Assembly (NCBI GenBank): GCA_002269645.1
Contig: NIVC01001457.1
Location: 1-64,000, forward strand
Direction of reading: 5' to 3'
Source of the DNA: Macrostomum lignano
Lineage: Eukaryota
Length of the DNA stretch: 64,000 nt
The translations under genes and the position numbers were made by a program. The first letter of the stretch is position 1. Each line of letters begins with the position of its first letter. Shown here one piece after another: positions 18,501-24,500 of this stretch. The notes under the pieces were generated by a model that was given only the letters and a program-made list of their open reading frames with translations, was not told where the DNA came from and ran no database searches.

Positions 18501-21500
18501 TATATGCAAAACTGTCTGTATTTATCGCTCTTATTAAAATTCAGCGCCTTTATTTTATGTTGACTTCACTTTTCTTGTATAACAAATCGTTACTGTATGT
18601 CGATCTGAATTATCATTAATTATTGTCTCGCGTATTCATCTTGATAGATCTCAGATCTACTCGTATGTACGAGCGTACTATAAGTTATGCAAGGACTAAT
18701 TAAGTAGAAGGATGCCACTCTCGAAATCAATGACAATTTTGAAGGCATGCTTGCTTGCATTGCAGCTAAAATTTAAAGGCCTCTGGCTCCGGATCAGTTG
18801 CAGTTAAAAGGATAATTCTTTAGCCAGATTGTTCGAAATTTTGTTCTCTTGACATGATGCAATGTTTGACCCTATATCTGCATTTGAGTAAAAGCTACAT
18901 CGAATATTTCATTGCAGTCAAAATGAATAATATATAGATTACTCCAAACGTCCTTGATACTATGTAAGTAAAAGATTTTGTGTGAAAAAAGAAAGATTTT
19001 GTATGACAATTCGTCATCCGGCTCGCAACTTACCTGATTTTTATCCAGCTCGCAGTTCTTGTACTCCTGCTCGCCTTCCTGTTGAAATGTAACAATCACA
19101 AAGCCGACAAAAATGTTAACCATGAAGAAGGCTATAATGATGATGAATACTATGTAAAATATTGCTACTGGTGGCCGGTTGTTGTAAATGCCGCTCATAC
19201 TCTCTCCAGCGGAGTCAATTGATCGATACAGCAGCCTGTGTTGGAGCGGTAGGTAAAAAAACGTATTATGAAAAAACTAGACAAAATTATCCAAGTTGAA
19301 GTCTCTAAGCTAATGAAAATTTTGGAAGCTAACGGCAACTCAACCTGTCTTTAGTCGCCCCCAGCCACTCACTTTGGCCAGCCTTCGAACGTAGCCACAG
19401 CGAACAAGGACAGCAAAGCATTTGGCACGTTGTCGAAATTCAAATCATTGTTAGTCCAAGTTCTGACGCTGTACTCCGGACTGCGAACATCGTTGTTCTT
19501 GTAGTAGATAAAGTAGCCCTGGCAATCGGCTTCCACCATTTTGGATGGATCGTTGCAGTATTGAAATTTGCCCTTGAACAGTTGGACTCCAATTACGGAG
19601 AACATGAATTCGAGAAGAAATGTGACTAGCATGATGTTTCCAATGCTCTTCACGGCGACAATGACGCACTGGACTACGTGCTGAATGTTTTATATAGCGG
19701 AATCAATTGAAAGAGCTGCAGAGTTTTTACTATTACAAATAAAGTACATAAAAGATGCATAGTTGTGCCCAAACTACATGTCTGAAAGCACTCTGGACCT
19801 TTAAGACCGTAAGCACGTAGAGTCTTAGATATCTCACATGGTAGAAATTGCACATTCAGTTTAACAAAATTAATTAAGTTTTAAAGCGAAGATTTCAACA
19901 CATCAAATATTGAAGTCATTTTGACTAAACTAAGCATCAGTACCAGTGTTTCGCAGTCCCTGATAATATTAACAAGTGTCATATATCAAAACATTTCTAA
20001 TTTCGCTAGCTGGGCGCTACTATGACACGACTCTAAGTTTCCAGAAAAGCAATTCTTTTTTCGAGTTCTTCACCTTAAGTCCTTTGGCTCGATTAATCGC
20101 CCGCAGTGGCCGTAGAACCCTCAGAACTCTAAGAATCTTCACCACCGAGAATGTGTCGTTTCTGCAGGAGTGAGCAAAAAACAATGACTACCTTTGTATA
20201 TTAAGAAACATTAGTATGAAAAATAAAGAATAGCGATTCGATCATTGTTAATAAAAAATACAAACATGCATTTATTTAGGACGAAGCACAGAAAAAGACA
20301 CAAACCGATGAACCAAAAGTAAATTTTGGTAGAAAAGAGCTATTTAAACACCCTTAGGCACTTTGAAAGGCAGCAATTTTCGAATAGGTGCATAGCTTCC
20401 GATGTTAGCCAAAAAAACTATGAGAAAGCTTTAACCTGAGCTCTCCATCAAAAGGTAAATTGGGGCCTACCCGCCAAAAGGTGAATCAGCTCTGAAATTA
20501 CAAATGGTGTGTCGCTTTGGAGTTCCGTATTTCTTAGAAAAAGATCTGACTCAAAAATGTTAAAATTGATGACAATACGAGCTATATGTAGCTACCAGAC
20601 AATAGTCATGACATACGGGCGTATATAATCCGTTTTGACATCTAAATTTTTGTATAGCTAAAACAAAATTAAAAAAAACTACTGAAGCTTTTTAGTTTAT
20701 TAATGAGTAAATAACCAGAAAATGTATTTCATTTTACTAATAAGAATTCGCTTTTGAGCTGGTCTAGATAAGAAATCAATAGGCTGCAAAATACAATAAA
20801 AATTAAATCTGAACTAAAGCTGAGCACACAAATCTGTCACTCACTCCATAAAGAATGACACCAGTGCTATGACAACTACAAGCAAGTCCAAAAGATTGAA
20901 TGTGGACCTGCAGTAGGAACCTTTGTGCATAACTGCTCCGTAGGCAATCACCTGTGGTGATTTTTTAAATAAAATAAATGTAAATGCAGTAAAACAAACA
21001 AAATTGAGGCTATACAGCATCAAAGTAAGCATGCTATCGATTCGCTTTTAATAATTAATGACAGAGTGCTTTTGTGATGTGGTAACAAAAGGTTAGGAGG
21101 AGTGCAAAATTACGGAGAATTAGAGACGTGTGGATTACAAAACGACATGACAGACACTTGAATATTTAAAGTAATTGCGCCATATTAAGCGAGAAATTTA
21201 ACAATGATTGGGTGCGCCTAATTTCACCCTGGTTAATAATAGCTGATGCCTAATTTGTTGGTTTTCTTTATCAAAACTAAACTGTTCTGTCAAAAATGAA
21301 TACATTTCAGAAACTCTGACGACAAAACTCTGACGTCTTGGCATCCTAGGTTCTGCAGTTAGATTTGGTATACATTCATACAACCATTGATTCAAAATAT
21401 TTTATACGTAGCTCGTGGACTAATTAAACTTAGGAAGATTGTAAGATTTTTATGGATTTTGTAGTCCCTGCCGTTTTTAATTTTGTTTGCACCATATCTT

Positions 21501-24500
21501 TCGTGCATGCATTGCGTGCGTTTGTAATTTCGGGAAGTGCAGTGGTAGGTGGTACAGTTCTGATTACCAAAAGAAAGAAGAAATCAACCACAAAGCAAGC
21601 GACACAGAGTTGGTGAGAGATTTAAACAAAAGTAAGCACAAGGATTACGGGTGGTGCAGGTGAGGAATCGACATCTCAATAAATGTTAACCCAATTCCAA
21701 GCATAATGAATACTTCAGACTGGGAAACGTACTCTAAACAGAATGAGATGATGCTGGTGAATACTACCAGCATGTCCAGCAGGTTAAACGCCTGTCTGCA
21801 GAAAGCACCGCGGTGAAAAATAACGCCGTAAGCGGTCACCTAAAATCGAAATATTTACGTTTTATTTCTGGTAGAAACTTTCTATTCTTTAAGCTAAAAG
21901 ATTCTACACCGTCTGCACAGGAAAAATTGGTTAGCGTAAGAATTCAAGTTAATGAACGAAAACACTGCCTACCTTGAGTAGAATTTCCACGGTAAATACG
22001 CTGGTGAAAAATAAGTCGAACTTGTTCAGAATCTGCAATTGATCGGTTCTTGATTTAAACCAACAGTGACGATAAGAGAAGTCATTGGCGTTTCAGATTT
22101 ATTAAATTCTTTTCTTTGGTTAAAGAGCGCCCATTGGATGATAAGCTCTAAGCTAAGATTGTGGACAGTGATCTTGCGAAAAGTTCCTGAGCACGTACTA
22201 ACAAAAGTGCTGCATCAATAGAAAAAGGAACTGAGTTATCGAACAGAAGAATCGGGCTGGTACACACAGATAATAAATATTCGAAATTTTGAATGGGACT
22301 CGCCCAGCACGTCCTGTCATGTCACTTTTCGAAACTTCACAAATCACGTGGTCAAGCTAGAAAGCGAGCCTCACCTTATTTCGATTGTTCTGAGAATTAA
22401 CTGGCTCCTCAGCGGCAAGCATGGCCGAGCTGACCATGATGCAGGCGAGCACGACGCTTCCAAAATAGGAGTGATTGCAAATCTTGTGACATAGAACGCG
22501 AAAGCTGTTAGTGCTGCTCAAGATGAAAAAGGATGACGCCTCGGGGATTGGTTGCACTTTCTGCTTCATGTGCAACTCGGACATCCGTCGAGGTCGCGCC
22601 GAGGTCACCGGAACGTCTTCGGCGTCAGAGGTTTCGTCGTCGGTGTTCGGCTTACTCTCCGAGTCTGGAATTCGGATAATGAGGTTTTGAAACAAGCGTT
22701 CTTTGCATTTTGAGCACATGAAAAAATGTTCTAATTAGCTTGTACTGGTACTCGGCACCATATAGCTTCTGATATACCTGGGCCTTAAAATTCTGCTTGT
22801 GTACCCTTGTTGTGTACTGTCGCTTGATTCAACAGCAGGAGAAGTAACTTTGTCGATTTTAACAAGCAGACGAACCAATAGACGCTCAGTCCGAGGCATA
22901 ATTAAAAAGGCGTAAAAGCATCGTGTACTGTAGGAACAGTAAGAGCAAATGTTTTTTAAGTCAATCCGGACACAACACTTACCCGCTATAAAGACTTTCG
23001 GTTCGCCCACTCGGCCAATTTCCTCGAGCTTGTCGATGGCTCCAGGACCACCGCCGACAGACGTCGAGCCCACGCCGCCGGAGTTCGCGCCAGAGCCGGA
23101 GACAGCGGCGCCGGCTTTCTTGTCGCATTCGTCGCTGGCGTCTTTTTTCGCGTCCGACGTATTGTCCACGTCCGCTAAGTTGTCCACAGCGATGGCCAGA
23201 AACACGTTTAACAGGATGTAGTTGCCGCAGATGAATAAGATGACAAAATAGAAGCTGACTAGAACTCCAGTGGCGTCCTTGGAGATCAAAATGTGTTTTT
23301 TTATTTTTTGAAGGTTTGATAGAAATCTATGCGCTGTGTCATTCTCGAACGTTACACGTACATGTACAGGTTCTAACCTTTTGATCCCCGGTCTTATGAT
23401 CTGCACTGTTATGCTTCCAGTTTTACGAGAAAAATTTCTATTCATACGATCCCCACTCCTATGATGCCACTTTCCTAATCCCTTGCTCTTCTGATTCCCA
23501 CTCTCATGATCTCCAATCCCATGATCCCCAATCTCGTGATCTTCAATCCCATGATCTCAAATCCCACGGTCTCTAATCCCATAATCCATAATTCCATATC
23601 CCATATCCCATGATCTCCAATCCCATAATCCATAATTCCATATCCCATATCCCATGATCTCCAATCCCATAATCTCCAATCCCACGGTCTCCAATCAAAT
23701 AATCCATAATGCTCCACACTTTTATGATTCCCAATATTCTGATCTTAATTCAGTGGTCTGATTATTTGTGATTTGAAATTTATTATTGATATGATCCTCG
23801 CCCTTATCATTTGATACGAACTTTTATATTCAGTGAAGCGTAAAAGGAATCTTATTATTAAGTGAGGATTGCTTGCTTCTGGGTTTGTTTACTATTGGGG
23901 GGAATGCTTCTTATTTTTGTGGAGGCTTTCTTTCGTGGCGTACGCAGAAAAGTTTTTTATAAGCAGAAAATTGCAGCAGAAAATATCTACAGACAACTCA
24001 ATTTTAGTATATAGAAAGGTGATTTTCCTTGACAATTTTACTCGTATAATGTGATTTATGAAACTGAAAAAGGAATACTTTTAAGAAAAATGTGCTTTTG
24101 TTTTAATGAATTCACATGCATCGATAATTTCCGTCCCTGGCAATTATTGGCCTCCCCGAAGGGGACATTATATTGCTAGTCTGATACTAATTTGTATTAA
24201 ACCGAATTCGAGTTCTATTAAGTCTTACAGCTCCTGCATCAAGGACACCTAACTTTAAATACCTAATGATATTAAACATTTTATAAATATTATTTTGAAA
24301 ATCCGTACATTAAGACCACCGCTGCTGTTGATTCCGTCGTACATAACGCTGTTCCAATCTTCGCCAGTTAATATCTGAAAAGAAGCACATTTTCAAGATA
24401 TCAGATACGAGAACTGAGCAATGTTACTAAAAGTTTAGCACGTATTATTAAACATAGTTTCACCTGAAAGACGGTAAGCAACGACTGCCAGAAGCTGTCA

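Follow-up and report, generated by a model that had tools for sequence, protein, structure and literature searches.

A gene for the alpha-1 subunit of a Cav1 (L-type) calcium channel in the free-living flatworm Macrostomum lignano carries a genuine and conserved pair of exons, very probably used alternatively, for segment S3 of domain III (IIIS3). The gene lies on the minus strand of a stretch of 64,000 nucleotides (nt), i.e., positions 1 to 64,000 of contig NIVC01001457.1 (assembly GCA_002269645.1), the whole of which is called the window here. The two exons, a and b, stand one behind the other between the exons for IIIS2 and IIIS4 (Table 1), and they form a tandem-duplicated pair, the likely reading being that the IIIS2 exon is spliced to either a or b and then to the IIIS4 exon. 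Such splicing would give rise to two channels differing only in 17 of 36 residues, which lie at the end of S2, in the S2-S3 loop and in S3.

Anatomy of the Exon Pair and Its Reading Frame

Exons a and b each match the IIIS3 region of Cav1 in tblastn searches, and these recovered neither a third IIIS3 copy nor a second IIIS2 exon in the window or in the paralogues considered below; the single 60-nt IIIS2 exon claimed in an earlier note on this DNA is indeed the only IIIS2-like match in the window and in each paralogue. The two copies are identical at 66 of 107 nt (62%) and at 19 of 36 amino acids (aa), with the nucleotide differences numbering 13, 8 and 20 at the first, second and third codon positions, respectively. 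The glutamate codon in which either copy ends is completed by the first base of the IIIS4 exon, and both IIIS2-a-IIIS4 and IIIS2-b-IIIS4 form an in-frame sequence of 255 nt devoid of stops. When a is joined to b, the junction GA/GTGA reads GAG TGA, i.e., a stop, with further stops behind it (five in one count for the window), and the skipping of both exons in the window likewise shifts the frame into stops. Thus, the coordinates, translations, 781-nt spacing and frame argument of the earlier note, including its statement that joint inclusion breaks the frame, all held on re-reading the window sequence. Its numbering of the duplicated exons as 14a/b and 23a/b departs from our model, where the pairs are numbered 12a/b and 21a/b in a total of at least 28 exons.

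The same arrangement, with copies of equal length and phase that each have splice sites of their own, is found in three genes, i.e., the window gene and two paralogues. As these lengths and splice sites recur in two other genes with unalignable introns, chance can be excluded as their source.

Table 1. Coordinates of the duplicated exons, their splice partners and related features. Positions refer to the window unless another contig is named; slashes mark exon boundaries.
Feature	Coordinates	Strand	Length and phase	Splice sites or remark
Host gene, Cav1 (L-type) alpha-1	11628-37806	minus		28 exons, with a and b of each pair counted
IIIS2 exon	22032-21973	minus	60 nt, phase 0 to 0	AG/GT; upstream splice partner of a and b
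IIIS3 exon a	21839-21733	minus	107 nt, phase 0 to 2	gattttag/GTGACC...TTTAGA/gtacgt
a-b intron	20952-21732	minus	781 nt	
IIIS3 exon b	20951-20845	minus	107 nt, phase 0 to 2	caccacag/GTGATT...TATGGA/gtgagt
IIIS4 exon	20161-20074	minus	88 nt, phase 2 to 0	AG/GT; downstream splice partner of a and b
E21a (IVS6 pair)	14879-14662	minus	218 nt, phase 1 to 0	with E21b, 23a/b of the earlier note
E21b (IVS6 pair)	14586-14444	minus	143 nt, phase 1 to 0	
b-like IIIS3, Schistosoma margrebowiei (L003)	268-374 of UZAI01011604.1			Val-Ala at positions 28-29

Identity of the Host Gene

By its sequence, the host gene is one for a Cav1 (L-type) alpha-1 subunit. A human Cav1.2 probe served in tblastn solely for locating exons, alongside real homologues, and the exon boundaries were then set from the window's own sequence and from the real homologues. 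The resulting model runs from an ATG at 37806 to the end of the IQ exon at 11628, with every intron being of the GT-AG type, and encodes 1677 aa when the longer IVS6 exon is taken; C-terminal exons past ~11.6 kb fall outside it. The peptide encoded by the three exons IIIS2, IIIS3 and IIIS4 matches, over its full length, domain III S2-S4 of the Cav1.1, Cav1.3 and Cav1.2 structures with E-values of 1e-43 to 1e-48 (best 3.5e-48), as against 1e-32 for Cav3, 1e-27 to 1e-31 for Cav2 and 1e-23 or weaker for Nav. With a 728-aa query and the full-length 1677-aa model, the homologue listings covered proteins of ~0.55-1.75 times the query length; the named matches among those listed all bear L-type, "type D", "muscle" or uninformative labels and none that of another channel type, and the homologues carry the Pfam domains Ion_trans, GPHH and Ca_chan_IQ. 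Domains I-IV are all present in the translation, together with the EEEE pore motifs (TMEGW, TGEDW, TFEGW and TGEAW), as are the exon for the AID (the beta-subunit binding site in the I-II linker) and the C-terminal IQ exon, which was aligned to the human probe.

Within the species, sequence similarity equates the window gene with BOX15_Mlig027667g1. The M. lignano protein P0189 is 94% identical to the full-length model; both it and PAA70953.1 carry the peptide of the window's exon a, continued by an in-frame translation of the window's own intron. In addition, the window shares 99.5% DNA identity with NIVC01001194.1 across 9.5 kb that include the pair.

Both Copies Are Old and Constrained

M. 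lignano has several older Cav1 paralogues, ~75-80% identical in protein, and two loci from the same assembly, NIVC01001668.1 (L001) and NIVC01001069.1 (L002), were compared with the window gene. Both retain a 60-nt IIIS2 exon, the exons a and b of 107 nt each and an 88-nt IIIS4 exon in this order, with all sites being AG/GT, and the joining of a to b produces three to five stops in each of the three genes. Taking the three genes in turn, the intron upstream of a measures 133, 531 and 1552 nt, the a-b intron 781, 2007 and 943 nt, and the intron that follows b 683, 346 and 764 nt, and not one 10-mer is common to the introns of all three genes. Synonymous sites between the paralogues are saturated, with the proportion of synonymous differences (pS) being 0.56-0.82, and the corresponding nonsynonymous proportion (pN) is 0.06-0.18 for a-a, 0.12-0.17 for b-b and 0.23-0.32 for a-b comparisons; omega, where computable, is ~0.04-0.17 overall, i.e., ~0.08-0.17 for a and 0.04-0.08 for b. 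Exon b keeps its length, frame and splice sites across the three paralogues, with a protein identity of 69-80%. That the exons are conserved when synonymous sites are saturated and introns can no longer be aligned indicates that both copies have been kept as coding sequence, with purifying selection, to judge from the substitution pattern, acting on both in three old paralogues.

In trees of the 36-residue segment, the a and b copies of the same gene were paired in none of 500 bootstrap replicates, whereas the a copies grouped in 76% of them. As the exons group by type and not by gene, the duplication is older than the three M. lignano paralogues.

These patterns bear on whether one of the copies might be dispensable. 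Under one such reading, one copy is always used, and the other (b, or else a) is a non-coding relic that is never spliced in, or a poison exon whose inclusion only yields degraded frameshifted mRNA. The immediate stop upon joint inclusion fits this idea, as do the window gene's own transcript model, in which only exon a is present, and the poor pyrimidine tract of exon b. However, neither the relic nor the poison form needs conserved coding, and exon b displays just that, together with low omega values; a is constrained as well and is used in the protein model PAA65287.1; furthermore, PAA72656.1 joins IIIS2 straight to b. This reading is therefore held to be very improbable.

A still smaller chance, bordering on none, is accorded to an assembly artefact, whereby a paralogue or allele, collapsed or wrongly joined, would have supplied the second copy. 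Redundancy is admittedly high in the M. lignano assembly after a recent genome duplication (PMC5730564), but the same order and spacing class occur on three contigs in three diverged genes, and again in the 99.5%-identical copy. Moreover, the a and b copies of the same gene differ by 38% in DNA, which is more than any a-a or b-b pair, and each copy has splice sites of its own and is surrounded by intron sequence that is unique to it. The earlier note had named a mis-assembled paralogue and a copy that is never expressed as the circumstances that would undo its claim: the first is excluded by the three separate loci with the same layout, and the second is unlikely in view of the purifying selection on both copies and of the a-only and b-only junctions in transcript-derived models.

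Transcript Models and Public Annotation

The GenBank annotation of the assembly draws on RNA-seq (StringTie/TACO), a de novo transcriptome and TransDecoder open reading frames (PMC5730564). The assembled transcripts in it hold both an a-only path, at L001, and an IIIS2-b junction, at L002: PAA65287.1 (1973 aa) and PAA49886.1 of the former read IIIS2-a-IIIS4, and PAA72656.1 of the latter has IIIS2 joined directly to b with a skipped.

The UniProt models (A0A1I8...) present a different picture. In P0189 and P0310, exon a is read on into the intron, the exon a peptide itself being identical in P0189 and P0308, and P0190, P0312, P0192, P0070, P0318 and P0319 join residues 1-25 of a to the whole of b by way of a GT that lies in Leu-Val-Val codons. 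Taken at face value, the latter would mean that a and b are used together via a cryptic donor inside a, resulting in a channel with an extended S2-S3 region. The fusion has exactly this form in all the models just named, which come from two paralogues, and its 75 + 107 nt keep the frame. Nevertheless, it is absent from all GenBank (PAA) models, i.e., the documented transcript-derived set; it requires that a GT in the Leu-Val-Val codons serve as donor (in the window, GTATTC), and it adds half of a duplicated S2-S3/S3 segment to a voltage sensor that does not vary in length among the ~280 Cav1 sequences examined. The like model of the window gene, P0189, runs into the intron instead, which suggests that such models are frame-rescuing predictions. 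The fusions are taken to be predictions of this kind and not isoforms, and joint use through a cryptic donor is considered slightly more improbable even than a relic or poison exon.

More generally, the M. lignano models P0189, P0310, P0190, P0312, P0192, P0070, P0308 and P0311 are wrong at the pair, and P0190 and P0312 are also devoid of the IVS6 exon. The errors are of three types, namely the extension of a into the intron, the fusion of 25 residues of a to b, and truncation in a retained intron. The exceptions, which handle the pair as a-only, are PAA65287.1 and PAA49886.1 of L001 and P0069/P0321; the other public models examined mishandle it.

Against the alternative use of a and b must be set several points from the transcripts, the trees and the introns. 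The sole transcript-derived model of the window gene, PAA70953.1 (BOX15_Mlig027667g1), has IIIS2 joined to a, followed by a retained a-b intron that is read in-frame up to a stop, and the transcriptional units of this annotation often represent precursor RNA (PMC5730564). PAA72656.1 stops in the intron after b, as the donor GA/gtga there reads GAG TGA, and the b-IIIS4 junction is in no model. Hence, the use of b in the window gene itself is one that we infer from the paralogues and from selection. In the 36-residue tree, the b group has a weak bootstrap value of 35%; the introns of the three paralogues have no conserved regulatory element in common, and the functional difference between a and b is a prediction throughout.

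How Exclusivity Would Be Achieved

If a and b are indeed alternatives, their exclusivity would be enforced mainly by the frame incompatibility seen above, both in the stops that a+b brings about in each gene and in those that follow the skipping of both exons in the window: mRNAs with both or neither of the exons would yield no functional channel, and nonsense-mediated decay (NMD) would probably eliminate them. Exons with lengths not divisible by three are known to enforce exclusivity in this way through frameshift and NMD, as in the IIIb/IIIc exons of FGFR2, where double inclusion or skipping likewise leads to premature stops, although the gene is unrelated.

The choice between the two may in turn be made by regulated competition, with exon a having the weak donor and exon b the weak acceptor. 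The donors of a are the weaker ones (GTACGT, GTAGGT and GTACGT in the three genes), whereas that of b is the consensus GTGAGTG in all three; the acceptor region of b is A-rich. The conserved frame incompatibility, taken along with this asymmetry in splice-site strength, points to regulated competition between two sub-optimal exons as the most likely mechanism. Two other known mechanisms were considered and rejected. Steric hindrance needs a distance of less than ~50-60 nt between donor and branchpoint, as opposed to a-b introns of 781-2007 nt; U2/U12 incompatibility would call for one U12-type (A/GTATCCTT) and one U2-type site, but all sites are of the GT-AG U2 type, with the donors being GTAAG, GTGAG, GTACG or GTAGG and neither ATATCC nor GTATCC occurring among them.

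Neither RBFOX-type GCATG motifs nor conserved long-range pairings common to the paralogues were found. Of the conserved complementary elements (docking and selector sites) that exclusivity through competing RNA structures would call for, the nearest approach is in the window, where the introns flanking exon b hold a perfect inverted complement of 15 nt (AAACAAAATTAAAAA / TTTTTAATTTTGTTT; 20661-20675 and 21474-21488), the pairing of which would loop out exon b. A complement of this length was reached in 3 of 1000 resampled intron pairs; it is made up of A-U pairs throughout (-10.7 kcal/mol) and has no counterpart in L001 or L002, for which reasons it is regarded as only a weak lead.

What the Two Versions Change

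Going by the alignment, the exon corresponds to approximately residues 851-886 of rabbit Cav1.1, starting with the last turn of S2 and running through the cytoplasmic S2-S3 loop to the end of S3. Columns were counted as fixed between a and b where, over all M. lignano copies, the two types have no residue in common. They comprise position 2 (Thr in a, Ile/Val in b), positions 16-17 at the boundary of the S2-S3 loop and S3 (Gln-Ala in a, Ser-Thr in b), position 23 (Met/Ile in a, Leu in b), positions 28-29 in the outer half of S3, facing the charge pathway of S4 (Thr-Ser in a, Ile/Val-Ala in b), and position 35 (Leu in a, Ile/Met/Ser in b). Both versions share the aspartate of S3 (NLLD) and its terminal glutamate. 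In most other animals, a hydrophobic residue followed by Ser occupies positions 28-29, so that a is more polar and b less polar than usual in the outer half of S3.

These differences suggest that the a and b isoforms would differ in the gating of voltage sensor III, i.e., in its voltage dependence or kinetics; the splice-tuned voltage sensor of the earlier note is likewise a prediction about function. Voltage sensors II and III reportedly contribute most to the opening of Cav1.2, as Pantazis et al. are said to have found in 2014, and with sensor III having such weight, a shift in voltage dependence or kinetics would be the most likely consequence.

Parallels in Other Channels and the Question of Independence

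Among known systems, the closest parallel comes from human CACNA1C, in which IIIS2 is encoded by the mutually exclusive exons 21 and 22, each of them 60 nt long (PMC5748662) and thus of the same length as the single IIIS2 exon of the flatworm. As in the flatworm gene, the 21/22 pairs of CACNA1C and CACNA1D are equal-length tandem exons in voltage sensor III of a Cav1 alpha-1 subunit, one replacing the other; unlike it, the vertebrate pair covers IIIS2 and the S1-S2 linker, whereas the flatworm pair covers the S2-S3 loop and S3. The two also differ in arithmetic: the length of the vertebrate exons being divisible by three, an mRNA with both 21 and 22 remains in frame, and such a variant, which does not conduct, is known to occur (PMC5748662), whereas in-frame co-inclusion of the 107-nt flatworm exons is impossible. 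The vertebrate entries examined all have IIIS3 in a single version. As IIIS2 is single in M. lignano and IIIS3 in these vertebrate entries, the two duplications arose independently.

The insect Cav1 genes offer a second comparison, in that their alternative blocks are situated before IIIS1 and in IIIS5, with none at IIIS3; hence, on the sequences compared, the flatworm pair is independent of the insect Cav1 pairs seen in these data. Alternative IIIS3 exons in insects had been suggested by the differing IIIS3 of P0075 and P0214 from Anopheles gambiae and of two butterflies. P0075 and P0214 are, however, 76% identical, with differences scattered over their full length, and are therefore different genes and not isoforms; among 11 species of arthropods and molluscs with RefSeq isoform sets, none showed variation at IIIS3. 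In P0214, P0193 (Periplaneta) and P0191, the IIIS5 segment (HVVQCVIVA...GVQLFK) occurs twice in tandem, which suggests a duplicated 108-nt exon of arthropod Cav1 genes that annotators may have included twice. Isoforms of Periplaneta and Hermetia differ in the block just before IIIS1.

Beyond Cav1, the insect sodium channel gene para has mutually exclusive duplicated exons, k/l, that replace S3 and S4 of domain III (IIIS3-S4), and vertebrate Nav genes have exon 5N/5A in IS3-S4 and, in SCN8A, 18N/18A in IIIS3-S4. These Nav-family exons differ from the flatworm pair in including S4 or the S3-S4 linker, S4 being encoded by a separate constant exon in the flatworm gene. A psocid sodium channel has exons 27A-D in IIIS3-IIIS4 (PMC3805903), and cockroach para isoforms differ in gating, according to a study as cited in PMC9741552.

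The earlier note had spoken of convergent evolution. An independent event on a neighboring exon of voltage sensor III is indeed what the data indicate, but the surprise that the term conveys is overstated, because independent tandem exon duplications in Cav genes are already documented as recurrent (PMC9741552). In that work, Martinez-Gomez et al. 2022 recorded ten such duplications among the Cav genes of human and Drosophila, each of them independent and in a different exon, with CACNA1S and CACNA1F each having kept one copy of ancestral pairs; the phenomenon and the protein superfamily are the same as those of the flatworm pair. Flatworms are not mentioned there, and the text leaves the exons of the two Ca-alpha1D events unnamed (PMC9741552). 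A literature search on flatworm or Macrostomum Cav splicing turned up no description of an IIIS3 pair. Tandem exon duplication in voltage-gated Ca and Na channels was reportedly noted as recurrent by Copley in 2004. Thus, the pair is a further case of a known mode of channel diversification, unsurprising to channel specialists but useful for annotation.

Deeper Flatworm History

A tentative extension of the above, which we regard as possible though not probable, is that the a/b pair arose before the Macrostomorpha split from the lineage of planarians and parasites, and that it was partitioned in the latter into two Cav1 genes with one version each. Version a, the flatworm-type one, has Thr-Ser at positions 28-29 in common with the long Cav1 ("type A") of Dugesia, Schistosoma, Trichobilharzia and Cryptocotyle (LTSIISYPI), and version b is near the general spiralian consensus. 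The second schistosome Cav1, represented by the fragment P0026 of Schistosoma margrebowiei (CVALVSF), has Val-Ala at these positions, as does b; its locus has only 267 nt upstream of the IIIS3 exon, which is too short to show an a-type copy. The partition scenario is weakened by the shortness of the segment and the weak supports (35%), and also by a leech having Ala at position 29. P0206 and P0191 were tried as flatworm relatives of the b type and discarded, both being uninformative: the channels with which P0206 clusters are those of nemerteans, molluscs and arthropods, and P0191 is ~50% identical to everything. Conservation of the region IIIS4-IIIS5 is too high for it to show whether the M. 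lignano genes are orthologous to type A or to type B of the schistosomes.

If true, this history would constitute a protostome parallel to the vertebrate partition of ancestral pairs between CACNA1S and CACNA1F, and the S3 distinction would be old and important, having been preserved by splicing or by separate genes, including in medically important parasites.

The Second Pair and Other Features of the Locus

The window gene has a second duplicated pair, E21a/b (Table 1), which encodes the turret of the domain IV pore loop and the beginning of IVS6. Paralogue L001 has this pair conserved as well (40691-40984), and all four a/b combinations of the two pairs are stop-free in the gene model. The earlier note had counted at least four core isoforms on this basis; the IVS6 pair is real and conserved, with four combinations open, but the only one seen is that of IIIS3-a with IVS6-b, in the full-length L001 model PAA65287.1. 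In the UniProt models P0069 and P0321, both IVS6 copies are fused.

Dense short-period satellite arrays, with periods of 4-27 nt and lengths of up to ~2.3 kb each, lie at positions 34430-59912 of the window (e.g., 39872-42202 and 47412-49600), i.e., intron 1 and the region upstream of the gene, and they account for the extreme swings of GC skew in the composition profile. At L001, the a-b intron has a satellite built on CTACAATCTAGTCTAGA (23812-24997), and a later intron (27544-33004) has three called genes, one of them amine-oxidase-like and on the opposite strand.

Implications

The pair in the M. lignano Cav1 gene adds an independent case of four-domain channels diversifying their voltage sensors by tandem exon duplication, in a phylum for which none was found described for Cav1. 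The three old paralogues amount to natural replicates, in each of which both copies have been maintained. The corrected exon structure is needed for the cloning, knock-down or modeling of these channels in this transgenic flatworm. Should both versions of S3 shift the gating of voltage sensor III, they would amount to a natural mutant pair for studying that sensor, and if the link to the parasite Cav1 genes holds, the pair may inform how the L-type channels of schistosomes diverged.

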